64,000 nucleotides of DNA from Macrostomum lignano (GCA_002269645.1 NIVC01002372.1:115722-179721), one strand, 5' to 3'. Shown: positions 22,071 to 49,200, numbered from the stretch's first letter. Program-made: numbers and translations. Notes: generated from the letters alone by a model not told the origin.

Positions 22071-22086
22071 ATAACCCCCCCCCCAA

Positions 22087-22404
22087 GGGAGCCTCGGTTA
22101 GAGCGTCGGACTCACGACTTGAAGTTCGGGGGTTCGATTCCCGGATCACACTTGAAACAATGTGTCCTTGAGCAAGATACTCAATTCTGCATTGCTTCAG
22201 TTCACACAGCTGTAAAAATGGGTGCCAGCATTAGCTGGGGTAATTGAGGGTTTGTGTGGCGACCCCCAGTCCTTAGATGGAACAGCCGTACGCAGCCTTC
22301 AGATGCGCCGCGCAATAGCTGCGGCTGGCTGTCGGCTGCACATCTGGCCCAATAGGGGCAAATCTCTCTCTATCTATCTATCTATCTATCTATTCTTCTA
22401 TCTA
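22087..22404 (+). mobile_element. CORE-type SINE (family 1), copy 3 with (TCTA)n tail
   Basis: tRNA head, CORE-like segment, 3' body and a tctatctatcta tail that directly abuts the Helitron-like array. Confidence 0.8.
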
Positions 22405-24854
22405 TCTTAATACTAAAACTGGTGCGTTGTTTGTCTGTATGTATGTCAGTTCGATAACTCCTCCTAGAATACTTGCAACTCAGCGTTGAAACTTATATGG
22501 GAAAACTGCAAATTTTCCGAGGATGGCTTTAGGCTATTTTAATCTTTCATTTTCAATTTTTAAGATCCCTAAAAAAGCAGAAAATGGCGGTCTTGACCTT
22601 TAATAATCTTAATTGTCCCCTCTTTCTGCTTGGAGCTGAAAATTTGCATCAATTTTAGTGATTGCGCCATAAAATTTTTCTATCTTGGCAGTGTATTTTC
22701 TCTCAAGTGGGGGGATGGTCGCGTTCTCAGTGGCTGCGTGTGTACACTTGAACCCTGGCTCACTGACTGACTTTATAGACAATTGCGCAACTATTTGTGT
22801 TCTGTTTTTTAACAGGAAGCCCTGTGTATTTTTTGCACAGTGAAATTCAGTGCATTTTAATGCATAAACTTGCGAGCATCTTTAGCAGGCAGTGAACGTA
22901 CACTCGATATTTCAATGCTTAAAATCAGAAAGTTTCAAACACTAACTGTTGCTCGAGTTTTGAACTTAGAGAGGAGAGACTTATATTGCTGGAAAGATCT
23001 TGCTGCAATGAGTTCGGGGATATAAGTTTTTTGCTTTAAATATGAAAATTAAATTCACAGCATTCAAGAAAAGATTTTCATACTTTTAGCTTTCTGCAAA
23101 GATTGTGCTCATTTTGGAGTTCAATGGGGGTTCGACCGACCCCCCAATAGTTGGTGGGGGGGAGTTCAATTTCTAGCTGCACTGCGTATTGGAAGGGGGG
23201 TCGGTTGCTGTGTATTTGAGGGTTGATTTAGATTGCGCAATCTTTTTGTTAACTTTAACTGAGGCTGATACTGACTGCCTGAGAAATAAGTTGCGCAATT
23301 TAATTGGTTCAATGTTTTTACGGCGCCTTTCAACACGCAGCTGTCAACCCTAACCCTAACCCTAACCAATGAATTCTGAGAGCTGGGCTATTTGACGTAG
23401 AAATTTCGATTTAGTCCAGTTTCACGGAGAGGATTTCTATTTCGCGGAGAATATTTCGATGGTGTTCAGTTTCACGGAGAGGATTTCGATAGTGTTCAGT
23501 TTCACGGAGACGATTTCTGTTGCGCGGAGAGGTGTTGGAAAATGGGATTCCGCTGATGGAGTTCAGGGAATGGAATTCCGCTGATTGGAGTTCTTCCCCT
23601 TTCTTCTCCGAAGGAGGAGTTGGCCTCGTCTTAATACTAAAGTTGGTGCGTTGTTTGTCTGTGTGTGTGTGTGTTTGTTGGATAACTCCTCCTAGAATAC
23701 TTGCAAGTCAGCGTTGAAACTTATATGGGAAAACTGCAAATTTTCCGAGGATGGCTTTAGGCTATTTTAATCTTTCATTTTCAATTTTTAAGATCCCTAA
23801 AAAAGCAGAAAATGGCGGTCTTGACCTTTGATAATCTTAATTGTCCCCTCTTTCTGCTTGGAGCTGAAAATTTGCATCAATTTTAGTGATTGCGCCATAA
23901 AATTTTTCTATCTTGGCAGTGTATTTTCTCTCAAGTGGGGGGATGGTCGCGTTCTCAGTGGCTGCGTGTGTACACTTGAACCCTGGCTCACTGACTGACT
24001 TTATAGACAATTGCGCAACTATTTGTGTTCTGTTTTTTAACAGGAAGCCCTGTGTATTTTTTGCACAGTGAAATTCAGTGCATTTTAATGCATAAACTTG
24101 CGAGCATCTTTAGCAGGCAGTGAACGTACACTCGATATTTCAATGCTTAAAATCAGAAAGTTTCAACACTAACTGTTGCTCGAGTTTTGAACTTAGAGAG
24201 GAGAGACTTATATTGCTGGAAAGATCTTGCTGCAATGAGTTCGGGGATATAAGTTTTTTGCTTTAAATATGAAAATTAAATTCACAGCATTCAAGAAAAG
24301 ATTTTCATACTTTTAGCTTTCTGCAAAGATTGTGCTCATTTTGGAGTTCAATGGGGGTTCGACCGACCCCCCAATAGTTGGTGGGGGGGGTTCAATTTCT
24401 AGCTGCACTGCGTATTGGAAGGGGGGTCGGTTGCTGTGTATTTGAGGGTTGATTTAGATTGCGCAATCTTTTTGTTAACTTTAACTGAGGCTGATACTGA
24501 CTGCCTGAGAAATAAGTTGCGCAATTTAATTGGTTCAATGTTTTTACGGCGCCTTTCAACACGCAGCTGTCAACCCTAACCCTAACCCTAACCAATGAAT
24601 TCTGAGAGCTGGGCTATTTGACGTAGAAATTTCGATTTAGTCCAGTTTCACGGAGAGGATTTCTATTTCGCGGAGAATATTTCGATGGTGTTCAGTTTCA
24701 CGGAGAGGATTTCGATAGTGTTCAGTTTCACGGAGACGATTTCTGTTGCGCGGAGAGGTGTTGGAAAATGGGATTCCGCTTATGGAGTTCAGGGAATGGA
24801 ATTCCGCTGATTGGAGTTCTTCCCCTTTCTTCTCCGAAGGAGGAGTTGGCCTCG
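22405..24854 (+). mobile_element. Helitron-like subfamily A, two near-identical ~1.22-kb units without GA tract
   Basis: Units 22405-23628 and 23629-24854; 5' tcttaatactaaa, 3' ggaggagttggcctcg. Confidence 0.85.
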
Positions 24855-27800
24855 TATATACTAAAGTTGACGTGTTGTTTGTCTGTATGTCTGTCTGTGT
24901 GTCTGTCATTTCGACAACTCCTCCTTGAATAGTGCCAACTCAGCGTTGAAACTTATATGGGAAGATTGGAAATTATCCGAGGTCGGCTATAGGCTATTTT
25001 AATTCTGAAATTTTAATTTCTAAGATCCTCAAAAAAGCAGAAAACGGCGGTCTTGACCTTTGATAATCTTAATTGTCCCCTCTTTCTGCTTGGAGCTGAA
25101 AATTTGCATGAATTTTTAGTGATTGCGCCACAACTTTTCCCTATCTCTGCAGTGTATTTTCTCTCCAGTGGGGGATGGGGCGTTCTAAATGGCTGCATGT
25201 GTACAATCGGACCCTGGCTCACCGGCTGACTTTATAGACAATTGCGCAAACATTTGTGTTCTAATTTTCAATAGGCAGCCCTGTGATTTTGTTGAACCTT
25301 GAAATTCAATGCATAAACTTGCGGGCCTCTTTAGCAGGCAGTGAACGTACAATTGATATTTCAATGCTTTAAATCAGAAAGTTTCAAACGCAAACTGTTG
25401 CTCGAGTTTTTAACTTTGAGAGAAAAAATTAATATTGCTGGAAAGAACTTGCAAAGCTGATTTCAGGGATATAAATTGTTTGCTTTAAATATGAAAAGAA
25501 AAAGCACAGCATTGAAAAAACTATTTCCATACTTTTAACTTTCTGCAAAAATTGTACTCAGTTTTGCGAGACGTAATAGATAAAGTTGGGGGGAGAGTTC
25601 AACTTCTCACTGCTGCTGTGTATTGGAGGGTTGATTTAGATTGCGCAATGTTTTTCTTAACTTTAACTGAGACTGATACTGACTGACTGAGAAATCGGTT
25701 GCGCAATCAATTGATTCAATTGGTTAAATTTTTTATTTGAACACGCAGCTGTGTGTAGCTTTAACCCTAACCCTAACCCTAACAATAACTCTAACCAATG
25801 AATCCTGATATTTATTTTTTTTGACGGAGAAAATTTCGATTGAGTCCAGTTTAAAAGAGAGAATTTCGATGGTTTTCAGTTTCACGGAAAGAATTTCGAA
25901 GGAGTCCAGTTTCACGGAGAGGATTTCGATGGTTTTCAGTTGCACGGACAGGATTTCTGCTTCGCGGAGAGGATCTTGATGGATTTGGCATCTTCAATCA
26001 GTCAGAGAAAAGAGTAAAGAGAAGAATGAAAGCAGAAGAGAGATGAGATGATAGAAAACAGAGTAGAAATAAGTGGAGATATTAGACATGACAGATTGGA
26101 GAGAAGAGGGGATTTAGGCGGGAACGAAGAGGGAGAGAGAAGAAAAGAGGAGAGAGGAGAGAAAATAGATTAGGGATAAGAGCGTACAGAGAAAATAGAA
26201 GAGAGGGGAGAGTAGAGGAGAAAGAAAGAGTGAGATGAGGGGATGAGGGATGAGAGAGGAGGGAGACAGGAGAGACAAGAAAGGAGAAAAGAGGGGAGAA
26301 AGGAGAAAGGAGAGAGTAGAGACGAAGGACCAGTTAGAAGATATAAATACGGTAGTAGAGATGAGAGGAGAGATAGGAGAGAGAAGCGAGAGAAGAAGCG
26401 AGAGGAGAAGAGAAAGAGGAGAGAGGAGAGAGATGAAATAGATAAGAGAGTTAAGAGAGGAAAAAAGTGAGGAGAGGAGAGATGAGAGATGCGATAAAAA
26501 GAGATGAGTGAGAACATAAGAGAGAAGAGAGAAGAGATTAGAGAAGAGAGGGGAGAAGATAAAAGGAGCAAGGGGAGGAGAAAAGAGAGAATGGAGAGGA
26601 TAGAAAAGAGAGAAGAGAAGAGACAGGGAAAAGTGGAAAGGAGGAAAGAAAGATTGGAGACAAGTAAGTGGAGTGTGAGAGCGTATATGAGATATGAGAA
26701 ATGAGAGCAGAGAGGAAAGAAAAGAGAAGAGAGAGAGGGTTAAGAGAGACGATAGATAAGTGAATAGGGATGACATATAAAAGAGGAGAGAAGAGGGAGA
26801 GATAAGAGAGAAGAGAGAAGACAGGAGACAGAAGTGAAGAGGAGAGATATGAGAGAAGAGAGGAGACAAGAGACAGGAGAGGGTACAGACGAAAGACGAG
26901 GGAGAAAACATAAATAAGGGAGTACGGGTAGAGATGAGATGAGAGAGAGGAGAGAGAAGAGAGTCACGATAATAGCGAAGAGAGGAGAGAGGAGATATGA
27001 GAGATGTGAGAGTCTTTGAGCTATGGTCTTTGAAAGATTTTGTAAAGAATTTGGAGACGATTTGGAAGATGGGATTCAAGACATGGAATTTCAGTTGATG
27101 GATATTTCAGGGAATAGAATTCCGGTGATGGGAGTTCTTCCCCTTTCTCCTCCGAAGGAGGAGTTCCACTCGTCTATATATACTAAAGTTGACGCGTTGT
27201 TTGTCTGTCTGTCTGTGTGTCTGTCTGTCATTTCGACAACTCCTCCTTGAATAGTGGCAACTCAGCGTTGAAACTTATATGGGAAGATTGGAAATTATCC
27301 GAGGTCGGCTATAGGCTATTTTAATTCTGAAATTTTAATTTCTAAGATCCTCAAAAAAGCAGAAAACGGCGGTCTTGACCTTTGATAATCTTAATTGTCC
27401 CCTCTTTCTGCTTGGAGCTGAAAATTTGCATGAATTTCAAGTGATTGCGCCACAACTTTTCCCTATCTCTGCAGTGTATTTTCTCTCCAGTGGGGGGATG
27501 GGGCGTTCTAAATGGCTGCATGTGTACAATCGGACCCTGGCTCACCGGCTGACTTTATAGACAATTGCGCAAAGATTTGTGTTCTAATTTTCAATAGGCA
27601 GCCCTGTGTTTTGTTGAACCTTGAAATTCAATGCATAAACTTGCGGGCCTCTTTAGCAGGCAGTGAACGTACAATTGATATTTCAATGCTTTAAATCAGA
27701 AAGTTTCAAACGCAAACTGTTGCTCGAGTTTTTAACTTCGAGAGAAAAAATTAATATTGCTAGAAAGAACTTGCAAAGCTGATTTCAGGGATATAAATTG

Positions 27801-30800
27801 TTTGCTTTAAATATGAAAAGAAAAAGCACAGCATTGAAAAAACTATTTCCATACTTTTAACTTTCTGCAAAAATCGTACTCAGTTTTGCGAGACGTAATA
27901 GATAAAGTTGGGGGGAGAGTTCAAATTCTCACTGCTGCTGTGTATTGGAGGGTTGATTTAGATTGCGCAATGTTTTTGTTAACTTTAACTGAGACTGATA
28001 CTGACTGACTGAGAAATCGGTTGCGCAATCAATTGATTCAATTGGTTCAATTTTTTATTTGAACACGCAGCTGTGTGTAGCTTTAACCCTAACCCTAACC
28101 CTAACAATAACCCTAACCAATGAATCCTGATATTTATTTTTTTGACGGAGAAAATTTCGATTGAGTCCAGTTTAAAAGAGAGAATTTCGATGGTTTTCAG
28201 TTGCACGGACAGGATTTCTGCTTCGCGGAGAGGATCTTGATGGATTTGGCATCTTCAATCAGTCAGAGAAAAGAGTAAAGAGAAGAATGAAAGCAGAAGA
28301 GAGATGAGATGATAGAAAACAGAGTAGAAATAAGTGGAGATATTAGACATGACAGATTGGAGAGAAGAGGGGATTTAGGCGGGAACGAAGAGGGAGAGAG
28401 TAGAAAAGAGGAGAGAGGAGAGAAAATAGATTAGGGATAAGAGCGTACAGAGAAAATAGAAGAGAGGGGAGAGTAGAGGAGAAAGAAAGAGTGAGATGAG
28501 GGGATGAGGGATGAGAGAGGAGGGGAGACAGGAGAGACAAGAAAGGAGAAAAGAGGGGAGAAAGGAGAAAGGAGAGAGTAGAGACGAAGGACCAGTTAGA
28601 AGATATAAATACGGTAGTAGAGATGAGAGGAGAGATAGGAGAGAGAAGCGAGAGAAGAAGCGAGAGGAGAAGAGAAAGAGGAGAGAGGAGAGAGATGAAA
28701 TAGATAAGAGAGTTAAGAGAGGAAAAAAGTGAGGAGAGGAGAGATGAGAGATGCGATAAAAAGAGATGAGTGAGAACATAAGAGAGAAGAGAGAAGAGAT
28801 TAGAGAAGAGAGGGGAGAAGATAAAAGGAGCAAGGGGAGGAGAAAAGAGAGAATGGAGAGGATAGAAAAGAGAGAAGAGAAGAGACAGGGAAAAGTGGAA
28901 AGGAGGAAAGAAAGATTGGAGACAAGTAAGTGGAGTGTGAGAGCGTATATGAGATATGAGAAATGAGAGCAGAGAGGAAAGAAAAGAGAAGAGAGAGAGG
29001 GTTAAGAGAGACGATAGATAAGTGAATAGGGATGACATATAAAAGAGGAGAGAAGAGGGAGAGATAAGAGAGAAGAGAGAAGACAGGAGACAGAAGTGAA
29101 GAGGAGAGATATGAGAGAAGAGAGGAGACAAGAGACAGGAGAGGGTACAGACGAAAGACGAGGGATAAAACATAAATAAGGGAGTACGGGTAGAGATGAG
29201 ATGAGACAGAGGAGAGAGAAGAGAGTCACGATAATAGCGAATAGAAGAGAGAGGAGATATGAGAGACGTGAGAGTCTTTGAGCTATGGTCTTTCAAAGAT
29301 TTTGTAAAGAATTTGGAGACGATTTGGAAGATGGGATTCAAGTGGAGTTTCAGCTGATGGATTTCAGGGAATGGAATTCCGGTGATGGGAGTTCTTCCCC
29401 TTTCTCCTCCGAAGGAGGAGTTCCACTCTATATACTAAAGTTGACGTGTTGTTTGTCTGTCTGTCTGTCTGTGTGTCTGTCATTTCGACAACTCCTCCTT
29501 GAATAGTGCCAACTCAGCGTTGAAACTTATATGGGAAGATTGGAAATTATCCGAGGTCGGCTATAGGCTATTTTAATTCTGAAATTTTAATTTCTAAGAT
29601 CCTCAAAAAAGCAGAAAACGGCGGTCTTGACCTTTGATAATCTTAATTGTCCCCTCTTTCTGCTTGGAGCTGAAAATTTGCATGAATTTCAAGTGATTGC
29701 GCCACAACTTTTCCCTATCTATGCAGTGTATTTTCTTTCCAGTGGGGGTGGGAGCGTTCTCAGTGGCTGCGTGTGTACACTTGGACCCTGGCTCACTGGC
29801 TGACTGTATAGATAATTGCGCAATGATATGGCTACTGATAAGTTTTCCTGCCTTTCAATGGGCAGTCCTGTGTATTTGTTGGACATTGAAATTTAATGCA
29901 TCAACTTGCAAGCAGGCAGTGAACGTACACTCGATACTTCAATGCTATAAATCAGACAGTTTCAAACGCTAACTGTTCCTCGAGTTTTAAACTTTGAAAG
30001 AAGAGACTTATATTGCTGGAAAGATCTTGCAACGCTGAGTTCGGGGATATAAATTGTTTGCTTTAAATATAAAGACTAAAAGCACAGCATACAAAAACTA
30101 TTTCCATACTTTTAGCTTTCTGCAAAGATTGTACTCATTTTTAGTTCAATGCCCCCAACACCCGGGTTCAATTTCTAACTGCCACTGCGTATTGAAAAGG
30201 GGCCGGTCTCTGTGTACTGGAGGGTTGATTTAAATTGCGCAATCTTTTTGTTCACTTTACCTGAGACTGATACTGACTGACTTTGAAATCGGTTGCGCTA
30301 TCAATTGATTCAATTGGCTCAATTTTTTATTTAAACACGCAGCTGTGTGTAGCTCTAACCCTAACCCTAACCCTAACAATAACCCTAACCAATGAATCCT
30401 AATATTTTATTCTTTTTGACGGAGAAAATTTCGATTGAGTCCAGTTTTAAAGAGATAATTTCGATGGTTTTCAGTTTCACGGAGAGGATTTCTGTTTCGC
30501 GGAGAGGATTTCAATGGTTTTCAGTTTCACGGAGAGGATTTCTGCTTCGCGGAGAGGATCTTGATAGATTTGGCATCTTCAATCAGTCATAAAAGAGAGT
30601 AAAGAGAAGATCGAAAAGAGAAGAGACATGAGATGGTATAAAACAAAGTAGAAATGAGTGGATAGATTAGACATGACCGATGGAAGAGAAGAGGGGAGTA
30701 AGGCGGAAACGAAGAGGGAGAGAGAAGAGAAGAGGAGAGAGGAGAGAAAATAGATTAGGGATAAAAGCGTACAGAGAAAATAGAAGAGAGGGGAGAGTAG

Positions 30801-31859
30801 ATAGCGGAATGGGCGCCCGCGCCTTCCCGCTGTGTCCCCTCCGGGACAGCCCTGCAGCTAAGGGGAGAGTAGAGGAGAAAGAAAGAGTGAGATGAGGGGA
30901 TGAGGGATGAGAGAGGAGAGGAGACAGGAGAGACAAGAAAAGAGAGGAGGGAGAAAGGAGAAAGGAGAGAGTAGAGACGAAGGACCAGTTAGAAGATATA
31001 AATACGGTAGTAGAGATGAGAGGAGAGATAGGAGAGAGAAGCGAGAGAAGAAGCGAGAGGAGAAGAGAAAGAGGAGAGAGGAGAGAGATGAAATAGATAA
31101 GAGAGTTAAGAGAGGAAAGTAGTGAGGAGAGGAGAGATGAGAGATGCGATGATAAGAGATGAGTGAGAACATAAGAGAGAAGAGAGAAGAGATTAGAGAA
31201 GAGAGGGGAGAAGATAAAAGGAGCAAGGGGAGGAGAAAAGAGAGAATGGAGAGGATAGAAAAGAGAGAAGAGAAGAGACAGGGAAAAGTGGAAAGGAGGA
31301 AAGAAAGATTGGAGACAAGTAAGTGGAGTGTGAGAGCGTATATGAGATATGAGAAATGAGAGCAGAGAGGAAAGAAAAGAGAAGAGAGAGAGGGTTAAGA
31401 GAGACGATAGATAAGTGAATAGGGATGACATATAAAAGAGGAGAGAAGAGGGAGAGATAAGAGAGAAGAGAGAAGACAGGAGACAGAAGTGAAGAGGAGA
31501 GATATGAGAGAAGAGAGGAGACAAGAGACAGGAGAGGGTACAGACGAAAGACGAGGGAGAAAACATAAATAAGGGAGTACGGGTAGAGATGAGATGAGAG
31601 AGAGGAGAGAGAAGAGAGTCACGATAATAGCACAGAGTGGAGAGAGTAGATATGAGAGACGTGAGAGTCTTTGAGCTATGGTCTTTGAAAGGTTTTGTAA
31701 AGAATTTGGAGACGATTTGGAAGATAGGGTTCAAGACATGGAATTTCAGTTGATGGATATTTCAGGGAATAGAATTCCGGTGATGGGAGTTCTTCCCCTT
31801 TCTCCTCCGAAGGAGGAGTTCCACTCTATATACTAAAGTTGACGTGTTGTTTGTCTGTC

Positions 31860-31896
<37 letters not shown>

Positions 31897-34800
31897 GTGT
31901 CATTTCGACAACTCCTCCTTGAATTGTGGCAACTCAGCGTTGAAACTTATATGGGAAGATTGGAAATTATCCGAGGTCGGCTATAGGCTATTTTAATTCT
32001 AAAATTTTTATTTCTAAGATCCTCAAAAAAGCAGAAAACGGCGGTCTTGACCTTTGATAATCTTAATTGTCCCCTCTTTCTGCTTGGAGCTGAAAATTTG
32101 CATGAATTTCAAGTGATTGCGCCACAACTTTTCCCTATCTCTGTAGTGTATTTTCTTTCCAGTGGGGGTGGGAGCGTTCTCAGTGGCTGCGTGTGTACAC
32201 TTGGACCCTGGCTCACTGGCTGACTGTATAGATAATTGCGCAATGATATGGCTACTGATAAGTTTTCCTGCCTTTCAATGGGCAGTCCTGTGTATTTGTT
32301 GGACATTGAAATTCAATGCATCAACTTGCAAGCAGGCAGTGAACGTACACTCGATACTTCAATGCTATAAATCAGACAGTTTCAAACGCTAACTGTTCCT
32401 CGAGTTTTAAACTTTGAAAGAAGAGACTTATATTGCTGGAAAGATCTTGCAACGCTGAGTTCGGGGATATAAATTGTTTGCTTTAAATATGAAAAGAAAA
32501 AGCACAGCATTTGAAAAACTATTTCCATACTTTTAACTTTTTGCAAATATTGTACTCAGTTTTGCGAGACGAAATAGATAAAGTTGGGGGGAGGGTTCAA
32601 CTTCTCACTACTGCTGTGGATTGGAGGGTTGATTTATATTGCGCAATGTTTTTGTTAACTTTAACTGAGACTGATACTGACTGACTGTGAAATCGGTTGC
32701 GACATCAATTTGTTTCATTATCTGTGCCTTTTAATAGGCTGCCCTGTGTAATAGCCGGCCTGTGTAATGAATGAATAAACTTGCGAGCCTCTTTGGCAGG
32801 CAGTGAACGTACACTCGATATTTCAATGCTTTAAAACGGGAACTTTCAAACGCTAACTGCTCTTCGAGTTCTAAACTTTAAGAGAAGAGACTTATACTGC
32901 TGAAAAGATCTTGCAACGCTGAGTTCGAGGATATAAATTGTTTGCTTTAAATATAAAGACTAAAAGCACAGCATACAAAAACTATTTCCATACTTTTAGC
33001 TTTCTGCAAAGATTGTACTCATTTTTAGTTCAATGCCCCCAACACCCGGGTTCAATTTCTAACTGCCACTGCGTATTGAAAAGGGGCCGGTCTCTGTGTA
33101 CTGGAGGGTTGATTTAAATTGCGCAATCTTTTTGTTCACTTTACCTGAGACTGATACTGACTGACTTTGAAATCGGTTGCGCTATCAATTGATTCAATTG
33201 GCTCAATTTTTTATTTAAACACGCAGCTGTGTGTAGCTCTAACCCTAACCCTAACCCTAACAATAACCCTAACCAATGAATCCTAATATTTTATTCTTTT
33301 TGACGGAGAAAATTTCGATTGAGTCCAGTTTTAAAGAGATAATTTCGATGGTTTTCAGTTTCACGGAGAGGATTTCTGTTTCGCGGAGAGGATTTCAATG
33401 GTTTTCAGTTTCACGGAGAGGATTTCTGCTTCGCGGAGAGGATCTTGATAGATTTGGCATCTTCAATCAGTCATAAAAGAGAGTAAAGAGAAGATCGAAA
33501 AGAGAAGAGACATGAGATGGTATAAAACAGAGTAGAAATGAGTGGATAGATTAGACATGACCGATGGAAGAGAAGAGGGGAGTAAGGCGGAAACGAAGAG
33601 GGAGAGAGAAGAGAAGAGGAGAGAGGAGATGAGAGGGGAGATATGAGATAGCAGAGGGAGACAAGAGAGATAATAGGAAAGAGAATAGATGACGGATAAG
33701 AGCGTACAGAGGAAATAGAAGAGAGGGGAGAGTAGAGGAGAAAGAAAGAGTGAGATGAGGGAAGAGATATGAGAGAGGAGATATGAGAGACGTGAGAGTC
33801 TTTGAGCTATGGTCTTTCAAAGGTTTTGTAAAGAATTTGGAGACTATTTGGAAGATGGGATTCAAGTCATGGAGTTTCAGCTGATGGATTTCAGGGAATG
33901 GAATTCCGGTGATGGGAGTTCTTCCCCTTTCTCCTCCGAAGGAGGAGTTCCACTCGTATATACTAAAGTTGACGTGTTGTTTGTCTGTCTGTCTGTGTGT
34001 CTGTCTGTCATTTCGACAACTCCTCCTTGAATAGTGGCAACTCAGCGTTGAAACTTATATGGGAAGATTGGAAATTATCCGAGGTCGGCTATAGGCTATT
34101 TTAATTCTGAAATTTTAATTTCTAAAATCCTCAAAAAAGCAGAAAACTGCTTTTTTGACCCCCAATGACCTTCTTTTGCCACTCTGCCTGGGGCTTCAGC
34201 CAGTTTGTAAAAATAGCCACCCCAACCTCCGCCCGCGGGCCGCTGTGTATTGAGGGGTGGTGGGTGCGCGTGTTCTGCGTTCAATGCAAATAAAACCCCC
34301 CGCGAGTTGAGGGGTTGAGTTAATTTTAATGATTCCCCCGGAACGGGGGGGTTGGGCTTGGACTGAGTGTACATAGCTGTTGTAAACAGATAGAACTGTA
34401 CCGAGATTCAATTGGTTTTATTATCGGCCCTGTGTATTAGCTGGGCAGTGAAATTCAATGAATAAACTTGCGAGCTTCTCTAGCAAGCAGTCAGGAAATC
34501 GGTAAATTTTAAACGCTAACTGTTCCTCGAGTTTTAAACTTTGAGAGGAGAAACTTATATTGCTGGAAAGATCTTGCAACGCTGAGTTCGGGGATATAAG
34601 TTGTTTGCTTTAAATATGAAAAGAAAAAGCACAGCATTTGAAAAACTATTTCCATACTTTTAACTTGCTGCAAAGATTGTACTCAGTTTTGCGAGACGTA
34701 ATAGATAAAGTTGGGGGAGGGTTCAACTTCTCACTGCTGCTGTGTATTGGAGGGTTGATTTAGATTGCGCAATGTTTTTGTTAACTTTAACTGAGACTGA

Positions 34801-37800: not shown

Positions 37801-40800
37801 AGGCTGCCCTGTGTAATAGCCAGCCTGTGTAATGAATGAATAAATTTGCGAGCCTCTTTGGAAGGCAGTGAACGTACACGCGATATTTCAATGCCTTAAA
37901 ACGGGAACTTTCAAACGCTAACTGCTCTTCGAGTTCTAAACTTTAAGAGAAGATACTTATACTGCTGAAAAGATCTTGCAACGCTGAGTTCGAGGATATA
38001 AATTGTTTGCTATAAATGTAAAGACTAAAAGAGCAGCATCAAAAAAACTATTTCCATACTTTTAGCTTTATGCAAAGATTGTACTCATTTTTTGGTTCAA
38101 TGCCCCCAACAGTTCGGCGTTCAATTTCTAACTGCTACTGCGTATTGAAAAGAGGTCGGTCTCTGTGTACTGGAGGGTTGATTTAGATTGCGCAATCTTT
38201 TTGTTAACTTTAACTGAGACTGATACTGACTGACTGAGAAATCGGTTGCGCAATCAATTGATTCAATTGGTTCAATTTTTATTTGAACACGCAGCTGTGT
38301 TGCTTTAACCCTAACCCTAACCCTAACAATAACCCTAACCAATGAATCCTGATATTTATTTTTTTTGACGGAGAAAATTTCGATTGAGTCCAGTTTAAAA
38401 GAGAGAATTTCGATGGTTTTCAGTTGCACGGACAGGATTTCTGCTTCGCGGAGAGGATCTTGATGGATTTGGCATCTTCAATCAGTCAGAGAAAAGAGTA
38501 AAGAGAAGAATGAAAGCAGGAGAGAGATGAGATGATAGAAAACAGAGTAGAAATAAGTGGAGATATTAGACATGACAGATTGGAGAGAAGAGGGGATTTA
38601 GGCGGGAACGAAGAGGGAGAGAGTAGAAAAGAGGAGAGAGGAGAGAAAATAGATTAGGGATAAGAGCGTACAGAGAAAATAGAAGAGAGGGGAGAGTAGA
38701 GGAGAAAGAAAGAGTGAGATGAGGGGATGAGGGATGAGAGAGGAGGGGAGACAGGAGAGACAAGAAAGGAGAAAAGAGGGGAGAAAGGAGAAAGGAGAGA
38801 GTAGAGACGAAGGACCAGTTAGAAGATATAAATACGGTAGTAGAGATGAGAGGAGAGATAGGAGAGAGAAGCGAGAGAAGAAGCGAGAGGAGAAGAGAAA
38901 GAGGAGAGAGGAGAGAGATGAAATAGATAAGAGAGTTAAGAGAGGAAAAAGTGAGGAGAGGAGAGATGAGAGATGCGATAAAAAGAGATGAGTGAGAACA
39001 TAAGAGAGAAGAGAGAAGAGATTAGAGAAGAGAGGGGAGAAGATAAAAGGAGCAAGGGGAGGAGAAAAGAGAGAATGGAGAGGATAGAAAAGAGAGAAGA
39101 GAAGAGACAGGGAAAAGTGGAAAGGAGGAAAGAAAGATTGGAGACAAGTAAGTGGAGTGTGAGAGCGTATATGAGATATGAGAAATGAGAGCAGAGAGGA
39201 AAGAAAAGAGAAGAGAGAGAGGGTTAAGAGAGACGATAGATAAGTGAATAGGGATGACATATAAAAGAGGAGAGAAGAGGGAGAGATAAGAGAGAAGAGA
39301 GAAGACAGGAGACAGAAGTGAAGAGGAGAGATATGAGAGAAGAGAGGAGACAAGAGACAGGAGAGGGTACAGACGAAAGACGAGGGATAAAACATAAATA
39401 AGGGAGTACGGGTAGAGATGAGATGAGACAGAGGAGAGAGAAGAGAGTCACGATAATAGCGAATAGAAGAGAGAGGAGATATGAGAGACGTGAGAGTCTT
39501 TGAGCTATGGTCTTTCAAAGATTTTGTAAAGAATTTGGAGACGATTTGGAAGATGGGATTCAAGTGGAGTTTCAGCTGATGGATTTCAGGGAATGGAATT
39601 CCGGTGATGGGAGTTCTTCCCCTTTCTCCTCCGAAGGAGGAGTTCAACTCTATATACTAAAGTTGACGTGTTGTTTGTCTGTCTGTCTGTCTGTGTGTCT
39701 GTCATTTCGACAACTCCTCCTTGAATAGTGCCAACTCAGCGTTGAAACTTATATGGGAAGATTGGAAATTATCCGAGGTCGGCTATAGGCTATTTTAATT
39801 CTGAAATTTTAATTTCTAAGATCCTCAAAAAAGCAGAAAACGGCGGTCTTGACCTTTGATAATCTTAATTGTCCCCTCTTTCTGCTTGGAGCTGAAAATT
39901 TGCATGAATTTCAAGTGATTGCGCCACAACTTTTCCCTATCTATGCAGTGTATTTTCTTTCCAGTGGGGGGTGGGAGCGTTCTCAGTGGCTGCGTGTGTA
40001 CACTTGGACCCTGGCTCACTGGCTGACTGTATAGATAATTGCGCAATGATATGGCTACTGATAAGTTTTCCTGCCTTTCAATGGGCAGTCCTGTGTATTT
40101 GTTGGACATTGAAATTCAATGCATCAACTTGCAAGCAGGCAGTGAACGTACACTCGATACTTCAATGCTATAAATCAGACAGTTTCAAACGCTAACTGTT
40201 CCTCGAGTTTTAAACTTTGAAAGAAGAGACTTATATTGCTGGAAAGATCTTGCAACGCTGAGTTCGGGGATATAAATTGTTTGCTTTAAATATAAAGACT
40301 AAAAGCACAGCATACAAAAACTATTTCCATACTTTTAGCTTTCTGCAAAGATTGTACTCATTTTTAGTTCAATGCCCCCAACACCCGGGTTCAATTTCTA
40401 ACTGCCACTGCGTATTGAAAAGGGGCCGGTCTCTGTGTACTGGAGGGTTGATTTAAATTGCGCAATCTTTTTGTTCACTTTACCTGAGACTGATACTGAC
40501 TGACTTTGAAATCGGTTGCGCTATCAATTGATTCAATTGGCTCAATTTTTTATTTAAACACGCAGCTGTGTGTAGCTCTAACCCTAACCCTAACCCTAAC
40601 AATAACCCTAACCAATGAATCCTAATATTTTATTCTTTTTGACGGAGAAAATTTCGATTGAGTCCAGTTTTAAAGAGATAATTTCGATGGTTTTCAGTTT
40701 CACGGAGAGGATTTCTGTTTCGCGGAGAGGATTTCAATGGTTTTCAGTTTCACGGAGAGGATTTCTGCTTCGCGGAGAGGATCTTGATAGATTTGGCATC

Positions 40801-43800
40801 TTCAATCAGTCATAAAAGAGAGTAAAGAGAAGATCGAAAAGAGAAGAGACATGAGATGGTATAAAACAGAGTAGAAATGAGTGGATAGATTAGACATGAC
40901 CGATGGAAGAGAAGAGGGGAGTAAGGCGGAAACGAAGAGGGAGAGAGAAGAGAAGAGGAGAGAGGAGATGAGAGGGGAGATATGAGATAGCAGAGGGAGA
41001 CAAGAGAGATAATAGGAAAGAGAATAGATGACGGATAAGAGCGTACAGAGGAAATAGAAGAGAGGGGAGAGTAGAGGAGAAAGAAAGAGTGAGATGAGGG
41101 AAGAGATATGAGAGAGGAGATATGAGAGACGTGAGAGTCTTTGAGCTATGGTCTTTGAAAGGTTTTGTAAAGAATTTGGAGAGATGATAGGAGAGAGAAT
41201 AGAGATGAGGGATAAGAGCGTACAGGGGAAATAGATGAGAGGGGAGAGTAGAGAAGAAAGAAAGAGTGAGATGAAGGATGAGGATGAGGGAGGAGAGGGG
41301 AGAGAGAAGAGAGGAGAAAAGAGGGGAGAAATGAGACAGGAGAGAGTAGAGACGAAAGACCAGGGAGAAGATATAAATAAGGGAGTAGGGGTAGAGATGA
41401 GAGGAGAGAGAGGAGAGAGAAGAGAGTCACGATAATAGCGAAGAGAGGAGAGAGGAGATATGAGAGACGTGAGAGTCTTTGAGCTATGGTCTTTCAAAAT
41501 TTTGTAAAGAATTTGGAGACGATTTGGAAGATGGGATTCAAGTCATGGAGTTTCAGCTGATGGATTTCAGGGAATGGAGTTCCGGTGATGGGAGTTCTTC
41601 CCCTTTCTCCTCCGAAGGAGGAGTTCCACTCGTATATACTAAAGTTGACGCGTTGTTTGTCTGTCTGTATGTCTGTCTGTATGTCTGTCTGTCATTTCGA
41701 CAACTCCTCCTTGAATAGTGCCAACTCAGCGTTGAAACTTATATGGGAAGATTGGAAATTATCCGAGGTCGGCTATAGGCTATTTTAATTCTGAAATTTT
41801 AATTTCTAAGATCCTCAAAAAAGCAGAAAACGGCGGTCTTGACCTTTGATAATCTTAATTGTCCCCTCTTTCTGCTTGGAGCTGAAAAAATGCACGAATT
41901 TTTAGTGATTGCGCCACAACTTTTCCCTATCTCTGTAGTGTATTTTCTTTCCAGTGGGGGTTGGGAGCGTTCTCAGTGGCTGCGTGTGTACACTTGGACC
42001 CTGGCTCACTGGCTGACTGTATAGATAATTGCGCAATGATATGGCTACTGATAAGTTTTCCTGCCTTTCAATGGGCAGCCCTGTGTATTTGTTGGACATT
42101 GAAATTCAATGCATCAACTTGCAAGCAGGCAGTCAACGTACACTCGATACTTCAATGCAATAAATCAGACAGTTTTAAACGCTAACTGTTCCTCGAGTTT
42201 TAAACTTTGATAGGAGAAACTGATATTGCTGGAAAGATCTTGCAACGCTGAGTTCGGGGATATAAGTTGTTTGCTTTAAATATGAAAAGAAAAAGCACAG
42301 CATTTGAAAAACTATTTCCATACTTTTAACTTGCTGCAAAGATTGTACTCAGTTTTGCGAGACGTAATAGATAAAGCTGGGGGGAGGGTTCAACTTCTCA
42401 CTGCTGCTGTGTATTGGAGGGTTGATTTAGATTGCGCAATGCTTTTGTTAACTTTAACTGAGACTGATACTGACTGACTGTGAAATCGGTTGCGCAATGA
42501 ATTGATTCAATTAGTTCAATCAGTTGTCTTTTAACACGATGCTGTGCGTAGTTCTAACCCTAACCCTAACCCTAACCAATGAATCCGGAGAGTTAAGTTG
42601 TTTGACGGAAAAAATTCGATTAAGTCCAGTTTAGCGGAGACGATTTCAATGTTTTAATTTTGACGGAGAGGATTTCTGTTTCGTGGAGAGGATTTCGATG
42701 GTGTTCAGTTTCACGGAGAGGATTTCGATGGTTTTCAGTTGTACGGACAGGATTTTTCTGCTTCGCGGAGAGGATCTTGATGGATTTGGCATCTTCAATC
42801 AGTCAGAGAAGAGAGTAAAGAGAAGAATGAAAAGAGAAGAGAGATGAGATGATAGAAAACAGAGTAGAAATGAGACGAGAGATTAGACATGACAGATGGG
42901 AGAGAAGAGGGGAGTAAGGCGGGAACGAAGGAGAGAGAAAAGAAGAGGAGAGAGGAGACGAGAGGGGAGATATGAGATAGCAGAGGGTGACAAGAGAGAT
43001 GATAGGAAAGAGAATAGAGATGAGGGATAAGAGCGTACAGAGGTAATAGAAAAGAGGGGAGAGTAGAGGAGAAAGAAGGAGTGAGATGAGGGATGAGAGA
43101 TGAGAGAGGAGGGGAGAGAGAAAAGAGGAGAAAAGAGGGGAGAAATGAGACAGGAGAGAGTAGAGACGAAAGACCAGGTAGAAGATATAAAAAAGGTAGT
43201 ATAGATGAGAGGAGAGAGAGGAGATAGAGAAGCGAGAGGAGAAGAGAGAGAAGAGAGAGGAAAGAGATGAAAGATCAGAGATAAGAGAGTTAGGAGAAGA
43301 AAAGTAGTGAGGAGAGGAGAGATGAGAGATGCGATGAGAAAAGAGATGAGTGAGAACATAAGAGAGAAGAGATTAGAGATTAGAGAAGAGAGGGGAGAAG
43401 ATGAAAGGAGAAAGGAGAGGAGAGAAGAGAGAATGGAGAGGATAGAAAAGAGAGAAGAGAAGAGACAGGGGATAGTGGTAAGGAGGAAAGAAAGATGGGA
43501 GACAAGAAAGTAGAGTGTGAGAGCGTATATGAGATATGAGAAATGAGAAGCAGATAGGAGAGAAAAGAGAAGAGAGAGAGGGTTAAGAGAGACGATAGAT
43601 AAGTAAGGAGAGATGACATATGAGAGAGGAGAGAAGAGGGAGAGATAAGAGAGAAGAGAGGAGACAGGAGACAGAAGTGAAGAGGAGAGATATGAGAGAA
43701 GAGAGGAGACAAGAGACAGGAGAGGGTACAAACGAAAGACGAGGGAGAAGAGATAAATAAGGGAGTAGGGGTAGAGATGAGATGAGAGAGAGGAGAGAGA

Positions 43801-46283
43801 AGAGAGTCACGATAATAGCGAAGAGAGGAGAGAGGAGATACGAGAGACGTAAGAGTCTTTGAGCTATGGTCTTTGAAAGGTTTGTAAAGAATTTGGAGAC
43901 GATTTGGAAGATAGGGTTCAAGACATGGAATTTCAGTTGATGGATATTTCAGGGAATGGAATTCCGGTGATGGGAGTTCTTCCCCTTTCTCCTCCGAAGG
44001 AGGAGTTCCACTTCGTACATATACTAAAGTTCACGTGTTGTTTGTCTGTCTGTCATTTCGACAACTCCTCCTTGAATAGTGCCAACTCAGCGTTGAAACT
44101 TATATGGGAAGATTGGAAATTATCCGAGGTCGGCTATAGGCTATTTTAATTCTGAAATTTTAATTTCTAAGATCCTCAAAAAGCAGAAAACTTGAATCTT
44201 GACCTTTGATAATCTTAATTGTCCCCTCTTTCTGCTTGGAGCTGAAAAATGCATGAATTTTTTGTGATTGCGCCACAACTTTTCCCTATCTCTGTAGTGT
44301 ATTTTCTTTCCAGTGGGGGGTGGAGCGTTCTCAGTGGCTGCGTGTGTACACTTGGACCCTGGCTCACTGGCTGACTGTATAGATAATTGCGCAATGATAT
44401 AGCTACTGATAAGTTTTCCTGCCTTTCAATGGGCAGCCCTGTGTATTTGTTGGACATTGAAATTCAATGCATCAACTTGCAAGCAGGCAGTGAATGTACA
44501 CTCGATACTTCAATGCTATAAATCAGACAGCTTTAAACGCTAACTATTCCTCGAGTTTTAAACTTTGATAGGAGAAACTTATATTGTTGGAAAGATCTTG
44601 CAACGCTGAGTTCGGGGATGTAAGTTGTTTGCTTTAAATATGAAAAGAAAAAGCACAGCATTTAAAAAACTATTTCCATACTTTTAACTTTTTGCAAAAA
44701 TTGTACTCAGTTTTGCGAGACGTAATAGATAAAGTTAGGGGAGGGTTCAACTTCTCACTGCTGCTGTGTATTAGAGGGTTGATTTAGATTGCGCAATGTT
44801 TTTGTTAACTTTAACTGAGACTGATACTGACTGACTGTGAAATCGGTTGCGCAATGAATTGATTCAATTAGTTCAATATTTTTATCAGTGCCTTTTAACA
44901 CGAAGCTGTGTGTAGTTCTAACCCTAACCCTAACCCTAACCCTAGCCAATGAATCCGGAGAGTTGAGTTGTTTGACGGAAAAAAATTCGATTAAGTCCAG
45001 TTTAGCGGAGACGATTTCAATGTTTTAATTTTGACGGAGAGGATTTCTGTTTCGTGGAGATAATTTATGATTAATTTCTGTTTAATGGAGACGATTTTAA
45101 TGGATTTAAGTTTGAAGGAGAGGATTTCGAAGGAGTCCAGTTTCACGGAGAGGATTTCGATGGTTTTCATTTGCACCGACAGGATTTCTGCTTCGCGCAG
45201 AGGATTTTGATGGATTTTGCATCTTCAGTCAGTCAGAGAAGAGAGTAAAGAGAAGAGCGAAAAGAGAAGAGAAATGAGATGATAGAAAAGAGAGTAGAAA
45301 TTAGAGAGGAGAGATGACAGATAGGAGAGAAGAGGGGAGTGATGCGGGAATGAAGAGGGGGACAGAATAGAAGAGGAGAGAGGAGATGAGATGGGAGATA
45401 TGAGATAGCAGAGAGGAGACAAGATGGATGAGAAGAGAGAGAAGAGAGACGGGATAGGAGCGTACAGGGGAAATAGAAGAGAAGAGAGAGTAAAGGAGAA
45501 AGAAAGAATGAGATGAAGGATGAGAGATAAGAGAGGAGGGGAGAGAGAAGAGAGGAGAAAAGAGGGGAGAAAGGAGACAGGAGAGGGTACAGACGACAGA
45601 CCAGGGAGAAGATATAAATAAGGTAGTAGAAATGAGAGGAGAAAGAAGCGAAAGGAGTAGAGAGAGAGGAGAGAGATGAAAGATCAGAGATGAGAGAGTT
45701 AAGAGAGGAAAGTAGTGAGGAGAGGAGAGGAGAGATTAGAGATGCGATGAGAAGAGATGAGTGAGAACATAAGAGAGAAGAGATTAGAGATTAGAGAAGA
45801 AAGGGGAGAAGATGAAAGGAGCAACGAAGGGAGAATATAGAGATAAGATAAGTTGATAGATAAGTGAGTAGAGATGACATATGAGAGAGGAGGGAAGAGG
45901 GAGAGATAAGAGAGAAGAGAGGAGACAGGAGACAGAAGTGAAGAGGAGAGATGAGAGAAGAGAGGAGACAAGAGACAGGAGAAGGTACAGACGAAAGACG
46001 AGGGACAAGAAATAAATAAGGGAGTAGGGATAGAGATGAGATGAGAGAGAGGAGAGAGAAGAGAGAGAAGAGAGTCACGATAATAGCGAAGAGAGGAGAG
46101 AGGAGATATGAGAGACGTGAGAGTCTTTGAGCCATGGTCTTTGAAAAGTTTTGTAAAGAATTTGGAGACGATTTGGAAGATAGGGTTCAAGACATGGAAT
46201 TTCAGTTGATGGATATTACAGGGAATGGAATTCCGGTGATGGGAGTTCTTCCCCTTTCTCCTCCGAAGGAGGAGTTCCACTCG
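24855..46283 (+). mobile_element. Helitron-like subfamily B, nine ~2.0-3.0 kb units with GA-rich tract
   Basis: 5' (tc)tatatactaaagttgacg..(gtct)n..catttcgacaactcctcc and 3' ctcctccgaaggaggagttccactc(g). Shared central modules, (TAACCC)n, 30-bp subrepeats and a polypurine tract. Confidence 0.85.
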
Positions 46284-49200
46284 TCTTATATCTAAAGCTG
46301 AGTGGGTCGATCGACCGGCCGGGTTTAACGCGTATCTCCTCCTAGACGGCTGGCAACTCAAATGCGGGACTTACATATATCAATTCAAAATTTTCCTACG
46401 CAACAAATAGGCTATTTTAATGTTGAAAAATTAAAAGTCAAGTCCGTTAAAAAAGCAAAAAACTGTTTTCTTAACCTTCTTTGGCCACTTTGCCTCTCCA
46501 GTGGCATTATTGTAAAAACAACCACCCCAACCTCCCCCGCAGGTCGCTGTGTATTGGAGGGGTGGTTGATGCGTGTTCTGGGTTCAATGCTAATAAAACC
46601 CCCGCGTGTTGGGGGGTTCAGTTAAATTTAATGCTTCCCTCCAGAACGGAGGGTTGGTTTGGGCTGAGTGTACATAGCAATGTACATTGTAAACAGATAG
46701 ATAGGACTGTGTCGAGATTCAATTGGTTTTACTATCGGCGCCTTTCAAAAGGCAGCCTGTCTGTATATTAGCTGGGCAGTGAAATTCAATGAATAAACAG
46801 CAGGCAGGTGAATGTACACTCGATACTTAACGCTTTGAACCGGGAAGTTCAGACGTTAACTGTTCCTTTTTTTAACTTTGAGAGGAGAGACTTATATTGC
46901 TGGAAGGATCTTGCAACGCTGAATTCGGGGATTTAAGTTATTTGCTTTAAATATGAAAACAAAAAGCACAGCATTGAAAAAACGATTCCATACTTTTAAA
47001 ATTTCTGCCAAGATTGTAGTTGGGGGGGGGGGGTTGAGTACACAAATTCAGGCCAGCTATCATTTGAGTAAATTCAGTAATGGAGGAGGCTGGTAACAAA
47101 TTTCAATTGGTTTGATTATCGGCGCTTTCAGTCCGTCAGATAAGAGAGTAAAGAGAAGAGAGATTTCAAGGAGAAGAGAGGATAGAAAGATGATAGAAAG
47201 ACAGTAGATATGAGAGATAAGAGATTAAAGACGACAGAGCCAGAGGGGAGAGAAGAGGGGAGTGAGGCGGGAATGATGAAGAGGGAGAGCGAAGAGAAGA
47301 GAAAGTAGAGGGAAGAAAGGAGGGGAGAGAGGAAAATGAGAGAGCAAAGGAGGGAGGAAAGATGGGAGGAGAGAGGAGGGATAAGATAGTACAGAGGAGA
47401 GAGAAGAGAGAGGAGAGATGAGACAGGAGACGGTAGAGAGAAGAGGGGAAAGATGAGAGATGAAGAGGGAGAGGGTAAGAGAGAAAATAGGAGTATGAGA
47501 ATTGAGAGCAGAGAGGAGAGACGAGAGAGAAAAAAGAGGAGAGAGAGAGGACAGGGTAGAGGAGAGGCGATAGATAAGCGAGTAGAGATGAGAGATGAGA
47601 GAGAAGAGGAGAGATAGAGAGAATTGAGAGAAGACAGGAGAGAAGAGATAGAGAGAAGAGGGGAGAGAGCGAAGCGAGAAGAGAAGGGAGAGAAGAGAGA
47701 GATGAAAAAACAAATGAGAGAGCAAAAGGGGAAAGATGAGAGAATAGAGATGAGAAAATAGAGATGAGAGCGTAGAGGGGAGAGATGAGAGATGGGAGGT
47801 GATTGATAAGAAAGTAAGAGTAGAGATGAGAGAGGAGATGGAGAGCAGGAAGCAGAAAGAAGAGATTAGATAAAGGAGCAAAGAGGAGAGAGGCGACAGG
47901 AGAGAGTCTCAGTCTGGACGATGGCAGTCAATTTTTGTAAACAGGGAAAACATGCTATGATATTTCAGAGGTTTTATGGAGGATTTGGAAGATTTGGAAG
48001 ATTTTTTGACGTATACCCAGACAAGTAAAAATCATATTTTTATAGACTTCAGTTTCATAGTCTTGATTGACTGAAATTTGATAGAGATAGTATTTTTTTA
48101 AATCGATGGATTGTAGCTTGAAGGAGGATGATACAAGCTAGATTGCAGTTTAACGGAGAGGATTTTGATGATAGCTGTTTCATGGAGAGGATGAAATGGT
48201 TAAATTGAAAGGGAATAGAGAAAAGAGAAAAGGCTAGAGTAGATAAAAGATTAGATGAAAGAGAACATGAAAAGAGAGAATTAAAAGGGACAGATTAGAG
48301 AAAAGAAAAAAAGAGAATACAGGCGAGAGAAGAGATGAAGGAATTGAGAGGAGAGAGGAGAGTGGTAAGAGAGGAGAAAGAGGAGACAGAGGGAGTAGAG
48401 CCAAAAGACGAGAGAGAAGAGATAAATTAGTAGAGATGAGGGGAGAGAGAGGAGAGAGAAGCAAGAGGATAAGGGAGAGAGGAGAGGGGAGAAAGTAGAG
48501 AGATGAGAGAGCAGAGAGGAGATAAAGGAGAGGAGAGAGAAGAGATAAAAGAGGAGAGAGGAAAAAGTTGAGAGGAGAAAGTAGTGAGGAGAGATAAGAG
48601 AGTAGACATGAGAAATGATAGATAAGCGAGGAGATGAGAGCAGAGAGGAGATAGGAGAGATTAGAGATGAGAGAGCAGAGAGGAGATAGGAGAGATTAGA
48701 GATGAGAGAGCAAAGAGGAGAGAGGAGACAGACGAGAGTCTCAGTCTGGACGATGGCAGGCAGTCAATTTTTGCACACAGGTAAAACAACATGGTTTTTG
48801 GGAGGTTAATAGAGGATTTGGAGAGGATTTGGACGATGAGATTCGTGTCATTGGATTCAGCTGATGGATTTCAGGGAATGAAATTCTGGCGATGGGAGTT
48901 CTATCCCCTTACTCCGCCAACGGAGGAGTTGGCCTCGTCTTCTTATATCTAAAGCTGAGTGGATCGATCGACCGGCCGGGTTTAACGCGTATCTCCTCCT
49001 AGACGGCTGGCAACTCAAATGCGGGACTTATATATATCAATCCAGAATTTTCCTACGCAACAAATAGGCTATTTTAATGTTGAAATTTCCAAAATTAAGT
49101 CAGTTAAAAAAGCAGAAAACTGTTTTCTTAACCTTCTTTGGCCACTTTGCCTCTCCAGTGGAGGGGTAGTGGCATAATTGTAAAAACAACCACCCCAACC

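Follow-up and report, generated by a model that had tools for sequence, protein, structure and literature searches.

We analyzed a stretch of 64,000 nt from the flatworm Macrostomum lignano (NIVC01002372.1:115722-179721, assembly GCA_002269645.1, Mlig_3_7), hereafter the window, which reaches the end of its contig. The window contains an uninterrupted array of 13 head-to-tail units with Helitron-type ends, all on the plus strand, which belong to three subfamilies: A (n = 2), B (n = 9), and C (n = 2). At two positions in the array, units of different subfamilies are joined exactly end to start, and these junctions are the subject of the current study. The array was delimited by motif search and self-BLAST, and all 13 unit starts and ends were aligned. 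Distances between units were calculated from tile-wise best matches and from terminal regions, as whole-unit global alignment is distorted by internal tandem repeats. We also compared the window to two paralogous loci of about 21 kb each, L002 (NIVC01000222.1) and L003 (NIVC01002449.1), which were found via the paralogues of a RING-finger protein; other contigs carry two near-identical paralogues or alleles of the RING-finger gene at window positions 13253-14569. The layout of the array is as follows (here and below, a slash in a sequence marks the point of joining or insertion):

22363-51241, plus strand: the whole inserted block, 28,879 bp, 13 non-autonomous Helitron-type units, as delimited by the empty site in L002.
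22363-22404, plus strand: 5' leader, 42 nt, TCT(A/T)-rich (TCTCTCTCTATCTATCTA…), ahead of the A-type core start TCTTAATAC.
22405-23628 and 23629-24854, plus strand: units A1 and A2, 1.2 kb each, A-type, with the junction CTCG/TCTTAATAC.
24855-46283, plus strand: units B1-B9, 2.0-3.0 kb each, with internal tandem repeats and purine-rich on the plus strand; the units end, from B1 to B9, at 27172, 29428, 31826, 33956, 36931, 39650, 41632, 44015, and 46283.
46284-48937 and 48938-51241, plus strand: units C1 (2.65 kb) and C2 (2.3 kb), with the junction CTCG/TCTTCTTATATC.
46258-46274, plus strand: 3' subterminal hairpin of B9 as an example, CTCCTCC-GAA-GGAGGAG, with a 7-bp stem, 9 nt upstream of the CTCG terminus.
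24829-24845 and 51216-51232: the equivalent hairpins of A2 and of C2 (the CTCCG-CCAA-CGGAG variant).

The sequence on either side of the array is collinear with the paralogous locus L002, from which the array itself is wholly absent; therefore, the whole array can be treated as an insertion in one host A/T site. The empty site is L002 18971/18972, where L002 reads …CCCAATAGGGGCAAA/TATTATTATT…, and the window at the same site reads …CCCAATAGGGGCAAA, followed by the insert (TCTCTCTCTATC … GGAGTTGGCCTCG), followed by TATTATTATT…. In other words, the target …GGGGCAAA/TATTATT… of L002 corresponds to …GGGGCAAA(TCTCTC…CCTCG)TATTATT… in the window, and the window flanks, joined in a script, match the L002 site at 119 of 120 nt. 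The insertion is located between host A (22362) and host T (51242) without target-site duplication, and the outline of the block is 5'-TC…CTCG-3', with the boundary ambiguous by 1 nt, since the insert and the 3' flank both begin with T. The 42-nt leader belongs to the insertion, as it is not found in the L002 empty site; the locus L003 ends 247 bp before this site. The flanks differ from the empty-site copy by 0.6-1.8% substitutions (about 1.2%).

It should be noted that the three paralogous copies (L001, L002, and L003) are mosaic at 8600-11500: upstream of the RING-finger gene, a single site out of 1398 distinguishes L002 from L003 and the window is about 2.8% away from both, whereas at the gene's 3' end L003 clusters with the window. 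This pattern suggests gene conversion or recombination between subgenome copies. As for the immediate surroundings of the site, the stack is inserted exactly between a dispersed repeat and a (TAT)n microsatellite (window 21650-22362). Related copies of the dispersed repeat are found at approximately 1527-1689 and 11900 of the window, and ARAGORN called no tRNA gene in the 21650-22362 repeat region.

The units appear to have the anatomy of non-autonomous Helitrons, canonical apart from CTCG in place of CTRR. They were inserted between A and T without target-site duplication, as is typical of the Helitron1 type; the outer end (22363) starts with TC; and a hairpin is found where a GC-rich hairpin is expected (about 10-12 nt upstream of the 3' end), with a 7-bp stem 9 nt from the terminus in B. 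The 3' terminus is CTCG except for three units with CTC and one with CTTCG, so that the third base is C and not a purine as in CTRR. Non-CTAG ends such as CTTG have been documented for Helraiser and maize (PMC4778049). Each unit starts with a short TCT-rich linker followed by ATACTAAAG (A and B) or ATATCTAAAG (C), and terminates with the subterminal hairpin followed by TTNNNCTCG. The 5' module is …ATAYYTAAAG and the 3' module is GGGAATGRAATTCYG…GGAGGAGTTNNNCTCG; altogether, the common terminal signals, through which all units would be mobilized, comprise about 16 nt at the 5' end and about 60 nt at the 3' end, including the hairpin and CTCG. The hairpin is CTCCTCC-GAA-GGAGGAG in B, a T.G variant of it in A, and a re-registered 5-bp stem in C. 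The interiors of C units are almost unalignable with those of A and B; nonetheless, the terminal motifs are common to all units. Retention of these motifs despite the difference of about 47% between B and C in the 5' regions is what would be expected for transposase recognition sequences.

No RepHel gene or open reading frame (ORF) was found in the window, and the units are therefore regarded as non-autonomous. Long minus-strand ORFs (S/L/F-rich, of low complexity) are present and have no Pfam match; these are artefacts of the purine-rich strand, resulting from strand asymmetry within units (GC skew of +0.4 to +0.5 and AT skew of about +0.25 in window 25000-51200) and from internal tandem repeats, for example, a repeat with an 82-nt period at 42627-42783 and (GAGAGGA)n at 48346-48728. 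The minus-strand ORF spanning the B9/C1 junction had no match in a protein collection, including the query itself, as such ORFs are absent from that collection. A scan of metagenome and viral contig collections with the conserved 3' module produced 0 matches, and no description of Helitrons in M. lignano was found in the literature.

Several other assignments were considered and rejected. A Helitron2/Helentron origin is at odds with the lack of terminal inverted repeats (inverted matches of the first 60 nt to the last 250 nt do not exceed 6-7 nt) and with the host site, which is A/T and not T/T. Replitrons are known to have short direct repeats at or near both termini (10.1101/2022.12.15.520654); the termini of the units (TCT…ATACTAAAG at the start and …GGAGGAGTTNNNCTCG at the end) have no direct repeat in common. 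Similarly, an ordinary satellite does not fit an array that has Helitron-type boundaries in an A/T site and changes subfamily twice at phase 0, within 6-12 nt.

The two junctions between subfamilies are the following:

24846-24870, plus strand: junction 1, A2 end TTGGCCTCG / B1 start TATATACTAAAGTTG, joined at 24854/24855.
46275-46300, plus strand: junction 2, B9 end TTCCACTCG / C1 start TCTTATATCTAAAGCTG, joined at 46283/46284.

The sequence reads …GGAGGAGTTGGCCTCG/TATATACTAAAGTTGACGTG… across 24854/24855 and …GGAGGAGTTCCACTCG/TCTTATATCTAAAGCTGAG… across 46283/46284. In each case, the 3' end of one element directly abuts the 5' T of a different element, without a host A, and the same holds for other junctions between diverged lineages in the array. 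For analysis of the two junctions, diagnostic sites were defined only from the other units and were then scored in the four junction units, which makes the comparison non-circular:

A2 (last 170 nt): all 66 scored sites in the A state, the closest one 4 nt from the end.
B1 (first 150 nt): all 15 scored sites in the B state, the closest one 1 nt past the first base.
B9 (last 170 nt): 41 of 42 scored sites in the B state, the closest one 4 nt from the end.
C1 (first 150 nt): 65 of 72 scored sites in the C state, the closest one 8 nt past the first base.

The switch of subfamily is thus confined to about 6 nt (A2/B1) and about 12 nt (B9/C1) around the CTCG end, which is essentially the 4-5 nt CTCG(T) common to the units. 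A random breakpoint in a unit of about 2.3 kb would produce such a position with a probability of about 0.3-0.5% per junction and about 1e-5 for both (simple arithmetic that assumes independent breakpoints). In addition, the A2/B1 junction carries the B linker (TAT), whereas a crossover in the 12-nt ATACTAAAGTTG common to A and B would leave the A linker (TCTTA). The original prediction, made from this DNA, placed the junctions at 24854/24855 and 46283/46284 and assigned them to A/B and B/C types; both the coordinates and the types were reproduced by the unit alignments and the diagnostic sites. It delimited the system at 24835-46300, an interval that includes both junctions but falls short of the actual feature (22363-51241). 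It also held that the idea would fail if crossover inside units accounted for the junctions; this was checked and rejected for both, as the switches are within CTCG(T), while true hybrids in the array have their breaks in unit interiors.

The starts of the two downstream units differ from other starts of the same subfamilies. B1 starts at 24855 with TATATAC, without 5'-TC and without the TCTA of the B1/B2 and B5/B6 junctions, in the same way as the starts at B4/B5 and B7/B8. We read this start as a sign that B1 may have been released by a nick after an upstream CTCG, i.e., from a tandem or circular donor and not as a canonical monomer. The start of C1 (46284) is 3 nt shorter than the start at C1/C2 (TCTTCTTATATC). 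All internal junctions are listed below:

A1/A2: CTCG/TCTTA.
A2/B1, B4/B5, and B7/B8: CTCG/TAT.
B1/B2 and B5/B6: CTCG/TCTATAT.
B2/B3, B3/B4, and B6/B7: CTC/TAT.
B8/B9: CTTCG/TACAT.
B9/C1: CTCG/TCTTAT.
C1/C2: CTCG/TCTTCTTAT.

A host A between CTCG and the next start was found in none of the 12 internal junctions (0/12). Five of the 12 internal starts begin with TC; the other seven begin with TAT or TACAT. The TCT(A/T) motif is reiterated in the 42-nt outer leader (TC TC TC TCTA x6 …), and the internal junctions have 0, 1, or 2 copies of it; the reiteration suggests slippage or repeated cycles of nicking and religation at the 5' terminus.

The divergence of the flanks can be compared to that of the units. 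Only some pairs are within the range of flank divergence, namely A1 and A2 (99.6-100% identical, a difference of 0-0.4%), B1 and B2 (about 1%), B3 and B7 over 1.3 kb at the 5' side, B2 and B6 over 1.4 kb at the 3' side, and internal parts of B3, B4, and B7; these pairs can be duplications that were made at this locus. Conversely, the difference between C1 and C2 is 6-9% along most of the two units (about 9% in the 5' regions), B8 and B9 differ by 2.5-5%, and the distances between subfamilies in the 5' regions are about 13% for A versus B and about 47% for B versus C. Because the flanks differ by about 1.2% and many neighbours differ by 3-9% or are unalignable, we count at least nine unit lineages that have to be older than the arrival at this locus. 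It follows that several homogeneous-looking junctions join non-sister copies, and that neither a single circle nor in-situ divergence can explain the array. That one rolling circle could not yield these junctions had been part of the original prediction, and this part holds: neighbours belong to different subfamilies and the units are older than the insertion.

Unequal exchange is also present in the array as a secondary process. The clearest case is a duplicated block:

27938-30745, plus strand: B2:766-B3:1317, 2.8 kb, which recurs at 38163-40968 (B6:1232-B7:1318) with 99.6% identity.

This repeat is the product of segmental duplication or unequal crossover in the array, with breakpoints within units. 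The comparison can thus pick up crossovers, and neither of the two subfamily switches is of this type. B6 is a distinct lineage over its first 1.2 kb or so and is identical to B2 afterwards; B4 is a mosaic of B3/B7 and B5; and groupings of the units by 5' ends and by 3' ends disagree. The B units in general are mosaics of several B lineages, with B5 and the 5' part of B6 being aberrant. In B5 (33957-36931), a segment of about 370 nt is nearer to C (about 78%) than to B, and the 3' end is 20% away from other B units; in the 5' part of B6 (36932-38160), B6:308-560 is nearest to the A subfamily (87-92%). The subfamilies, judged by these alignments, are mosaics, and their heterogeneity exceeds three types.

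These results suggest a model in which an HUH/RepHel transposase, rather than homologous recombination, made the unit-to-unit junctions. Such an enzyme would nick its own elements at two precise points, behind CTCG and in front of the 5' end, so that resident termini and head-to-tail junctions would be ready-made cleavage sites. Helraiser forms circles with precise right-to-left terminal sequence (RTS-LTS) junctions, where the 3' tetranucleotide is followed immediately by 5'-TC; the double-stranded circles are active donors that need one nick, and their plus strand is cut by the purified transposase precisely where the two ends meet (PMC4778049; PMC5876387). Because the Helraiser transposase cuts the circle junction exactly, resident termini and junctions could well be the best substrates of the enzyme. 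An incoming element, or a block nicked from a circular or tandem donor, would be ligated at the resident nick; repetition of this event at one locus would build a stack of copies from different lineages, each end joined to the next start without an intervening host base, and later duplication and unequal crossover in the array would reshuffle and amplify some of the units. We give about an even chance to this reading, i.e., that the transposase repeatedly joined element ends at resident termini at this locus and unequal exchange then reshaped the array. Both the sequential joining at this locus and the role of resident ends as enzyme targets are what we infer from the junctions and the unit ages. 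Three routes would lead to the same junction: (i) insertion between a resident CTCG and the host T; (ii) insertion between the host A and a resident 5' T; (iii) insertion at an internal junction. The stack could therefore have grown at its 3' side, at its 5' side, or at internal junctions.

The main alternative, which we consider rather unlikely, is that a mixed array, or a shorter precursor of it, was formed elsewhere and entered the A/T site in one step as a single composite. The source could be a chromosomal stack, or a hetero-multimeric circle or concatemer that arose via Rep-mediated strand switching at nick sites; the transfer would run from the outer 5' end through to the last CTCG, and only the 99-100% identical blocks would have been made locally. 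This would account for one clean A/T site with a 5'-TC…CTCG-3' outline over the entire 28.9 kb, for units far older than the flank divergence, and for old nearest relatives that are adjacent, as in a long-lived array. The TC-less starts (CTCG/TAT) and the degenerate junctions (CTC/TAT and CTTCG/TACAT) may terminate poorly, and read-through of the 3' end has been documented for Helraiser (PMC4778049). However, the composite would require read-through of many consecutive, apparently intact terminators (hairpin and CTCG), and it only shifts the question of how the heterologous junctions arose to some other site or molecule. The original prediction proposed a different version, in which the transposase prefers CTCG/T at a resident 3' end; under this version, the array would grow rightwards, A then B then C. 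The sequences at the junctions are in keeping with it, a nick behind the tetranucleotide at the 3' terminus is natural to the enzyme, and maize lines with only the upstream element favoured GT insertion at a resident 3' end, barring precise excision (PMC2267711). Nevertheless, this G/T preference is not upheld by the present analysis, and we find it doubtful: canonical A/T insertion at the host A and a resident 5' T produces an identical CTCG/T junction with leftward growth (C first and A last), such growth also fits C1 and C2 being the most diverged pair and A1 and A2 the least, and no feature of the locus indicates a direction.

Recombination could in principle have made the array without any transposase acting at the heterologous junctions, by unequal crossover, gene conversion, or end-joining between arrays, or by in-situ divergence of array edges. 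The 2.8-kb block duplicated at 99.6%, the hybrids B4 and B6, and the conflict between 5'- and 3'-based groupings are footprints of such exchange. The breakpoints of that exchange are inside units, though, whereas both subfamily switches are within the 4-5 nt CTCG(T); the interiors of B and C are essentially unalignable; and the divergence between subfamilies (13-47%) greatly exceeds the flank divergence of about 1.2%, for which reason in-situ divergence of the edges was rejected. We regard recombination as the sole cause as highly improbable. The same can be said of an assembly artefact, with a long-read assembler fusing A, B, and C arrays that are separate in the genome. Such errors are conceivable where the genome is neopolyploid and rich in repeats and the tandem array is close to the end of a contig; but the sequence in common at the junctions is far too short for a false overlap, the units are diverged enough to assemble, and the two outer ends of the array correspond base for base to a single empty site.

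Repeated joining by the transposase at this locus, the reading that we prefer, also has several observations to contend with, all of which weigh against it. At least eight independent joins within about 1.2% of flank divergence would demand very strong targeting of ends. Nearest relatives are mostly neighbours even when they are old (C1 and C2, B8 and B9), which fits an old array that was moved as a block. The seven of 12 starts without the canonical 5'-TC, that of B1 included, suggest that those units were probably not canonical monomer insertions. No further copy of the family was found in the remaining 35 kb or so of the window, or in L002 and L003, and the RepHel gene is likewise absent from the window. 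The direction of the change at the empty site, insertion or precise loss, rests on parsimony, given that the paralogues are mosaic, and on one paralogue; finally, the evidence comes from a single locus of M. lignano.

The neighbourhood of the array has some additional features. A 15-nt repeat (CCGGACATTTGCCCT)n forms two arrays immediately downstream of the RING-finger gene, at 14730-14931 and 15119-15331, which are inverted with respect to each other and together make a long imperfect palindrome. A remnant of a DDE_3 (Tc1/mariner-type) transposase ORF is located at 17149-17565 on the minus strand, with a weak Pfam match (E = 3e-4). A 12-nt minisatellite (GGTGCTGTTGAG)n (window 19778-20125 and L003 18470-18990) differs in length between the paralogous contigs. 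A reading frame located upstream of the insertion site (window 20257-21615 and L003 19120-20816) ends in a hydrophobic stretch, and our guess is that it may encode an ion-channel-like protein; compared to the L003 copy, that of the window has lost a few hundred bp from its interior. Sequence related to this frame is also found at approximately 53800-54300, downstream of the array, and neither is in the protein collection; two window ORFs on the right of the array likewise had no record. At 51951-52873, about 920 bp of the window are missing from L002 (…CTGCAGTAGCC/…/TGCGCAACGC…), with no obvious transposon ends. Lastly, a 28-nt tandem repeat of about 33 copies extends over 63033-63948, to within about 50 nt of the contig end, and is probably the reason why the assembly stops there.

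Enzymes of the HUH class are known to re-use their own nick site for joining, as in Rep-mediated switching at nick sites in rolling-circle plasmids and geminiviruses, and IS200/IS605 elements insert 3' of a tetranucleotide that also borders the resident left end. Hybrids or tandem copies fused at the nick site are the common feature of these systems and the flatworm array; as they are prokaryotic or viral, the resemblance is an analogy of mechanism only. The closest parallel is found in the r1 region of maize, where two different Helitrons, No.1 and No.2, are arranged head to tail as CTAG/TC with "a novel G/T junction" (Du et al. 2008, BMC Genomics 9:51, PMC2267711). Maize lines have none, one, or both of these elements, which was read as consecutive insertions and not as tandem repeats, and the authors discussed both insertion into GT at the resident 3' end and insertion into AT (host A and resident 5' T) plus excision (PMC2267711). 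In both species, the 3' tetranucleotide directly abuts the next 5' T without a host A. However, maize has two elements, compared to 13 units of at least three subfamilies and at least nine old lineages in one site of M. lignano; the maize elements end with CTAG, whereas the flatworm units end with CTCG, are non-autonomous and filled with repeats, and mostly lack TC at internal starts; and the maize case has presence/absence polymorphism among inbred lines, whereas here there is one empty paralogue. Since head-to-tail maize Helitrons with a G/T junction had already been reported, the high novelty that was originally attached to the flatworm junctions does not stand. The stack is an unusually elaborate new example of a phenomenon first reported in maize and not a new system.

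Other known arrays are less similar. Homogeneous tandem Helitron arrays in bat (Pritham & Feschotte 2007) and in plant centromeres (Xiong et al. 2016) have been read as concatemers of one element. In these arrays, as in Helraiser circles, the 5' end is joined straight to the 3' end, which is attributed to rolling-circle replication or circular intermediates; they consist of a single element, whereas neighbours in the flatworm array differ in subfamily or are too diverged for one circle. Three FoHeli-type Helitron copies are found in tandem in Metarhizium acridum (Chellapan et al. 2016, PMC5148889); these are of the Helitron2 type and of the same family, with asymmetric terminal inverted repeats, and the flatworm units are without such repeats. 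With regard to the units themselves, the parts of the rice Mothra report that we consulted describe non-autonomous, non-coding Helitrons of 1.2-2.7 kb that have blocks of tandem repeats, start with TC, and carry a 3' hairpin about 13 nt from the end (PMC4683698). Mothra elements, as described there, resemble the flatworm units in being non-coding and repeat-filled, with a TC start and a 3' hairpin; the difference is that Mothra is a high-copy family that ends with CTAG, and mixed stacks are not mentioned in the same parts of that report (PMC4683698).

The origin of tandem Helitron arrays is debated, with concatemers from one circle on the one hand and insertion beside a resident copy on the other. 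The M. lignano locus is a rich natural record in this respect, because at least nine old lineages are joined at the nick site within one A/T insertion, which is hard to obtain from a single rolling circle. A broader version of the model, which we put forward tentatively and consider less likely than not, is that the Helitron transposase of M. lignano strongly prefers resident termini and junctions, so that arrays would be self-reinforcing landing pads where one subfamily after another accumulates at a single harmless site, and mixed stacks would contain the majority of the copies of these families. If mixed stacks are the rule in the M. lignano genome, this would mean that HUH transposases re-use resident ends as targets, and it would explain both chimeric Helitrons, with the 5' end of one family and the 3' end of another, and Helitron-derived satellites.

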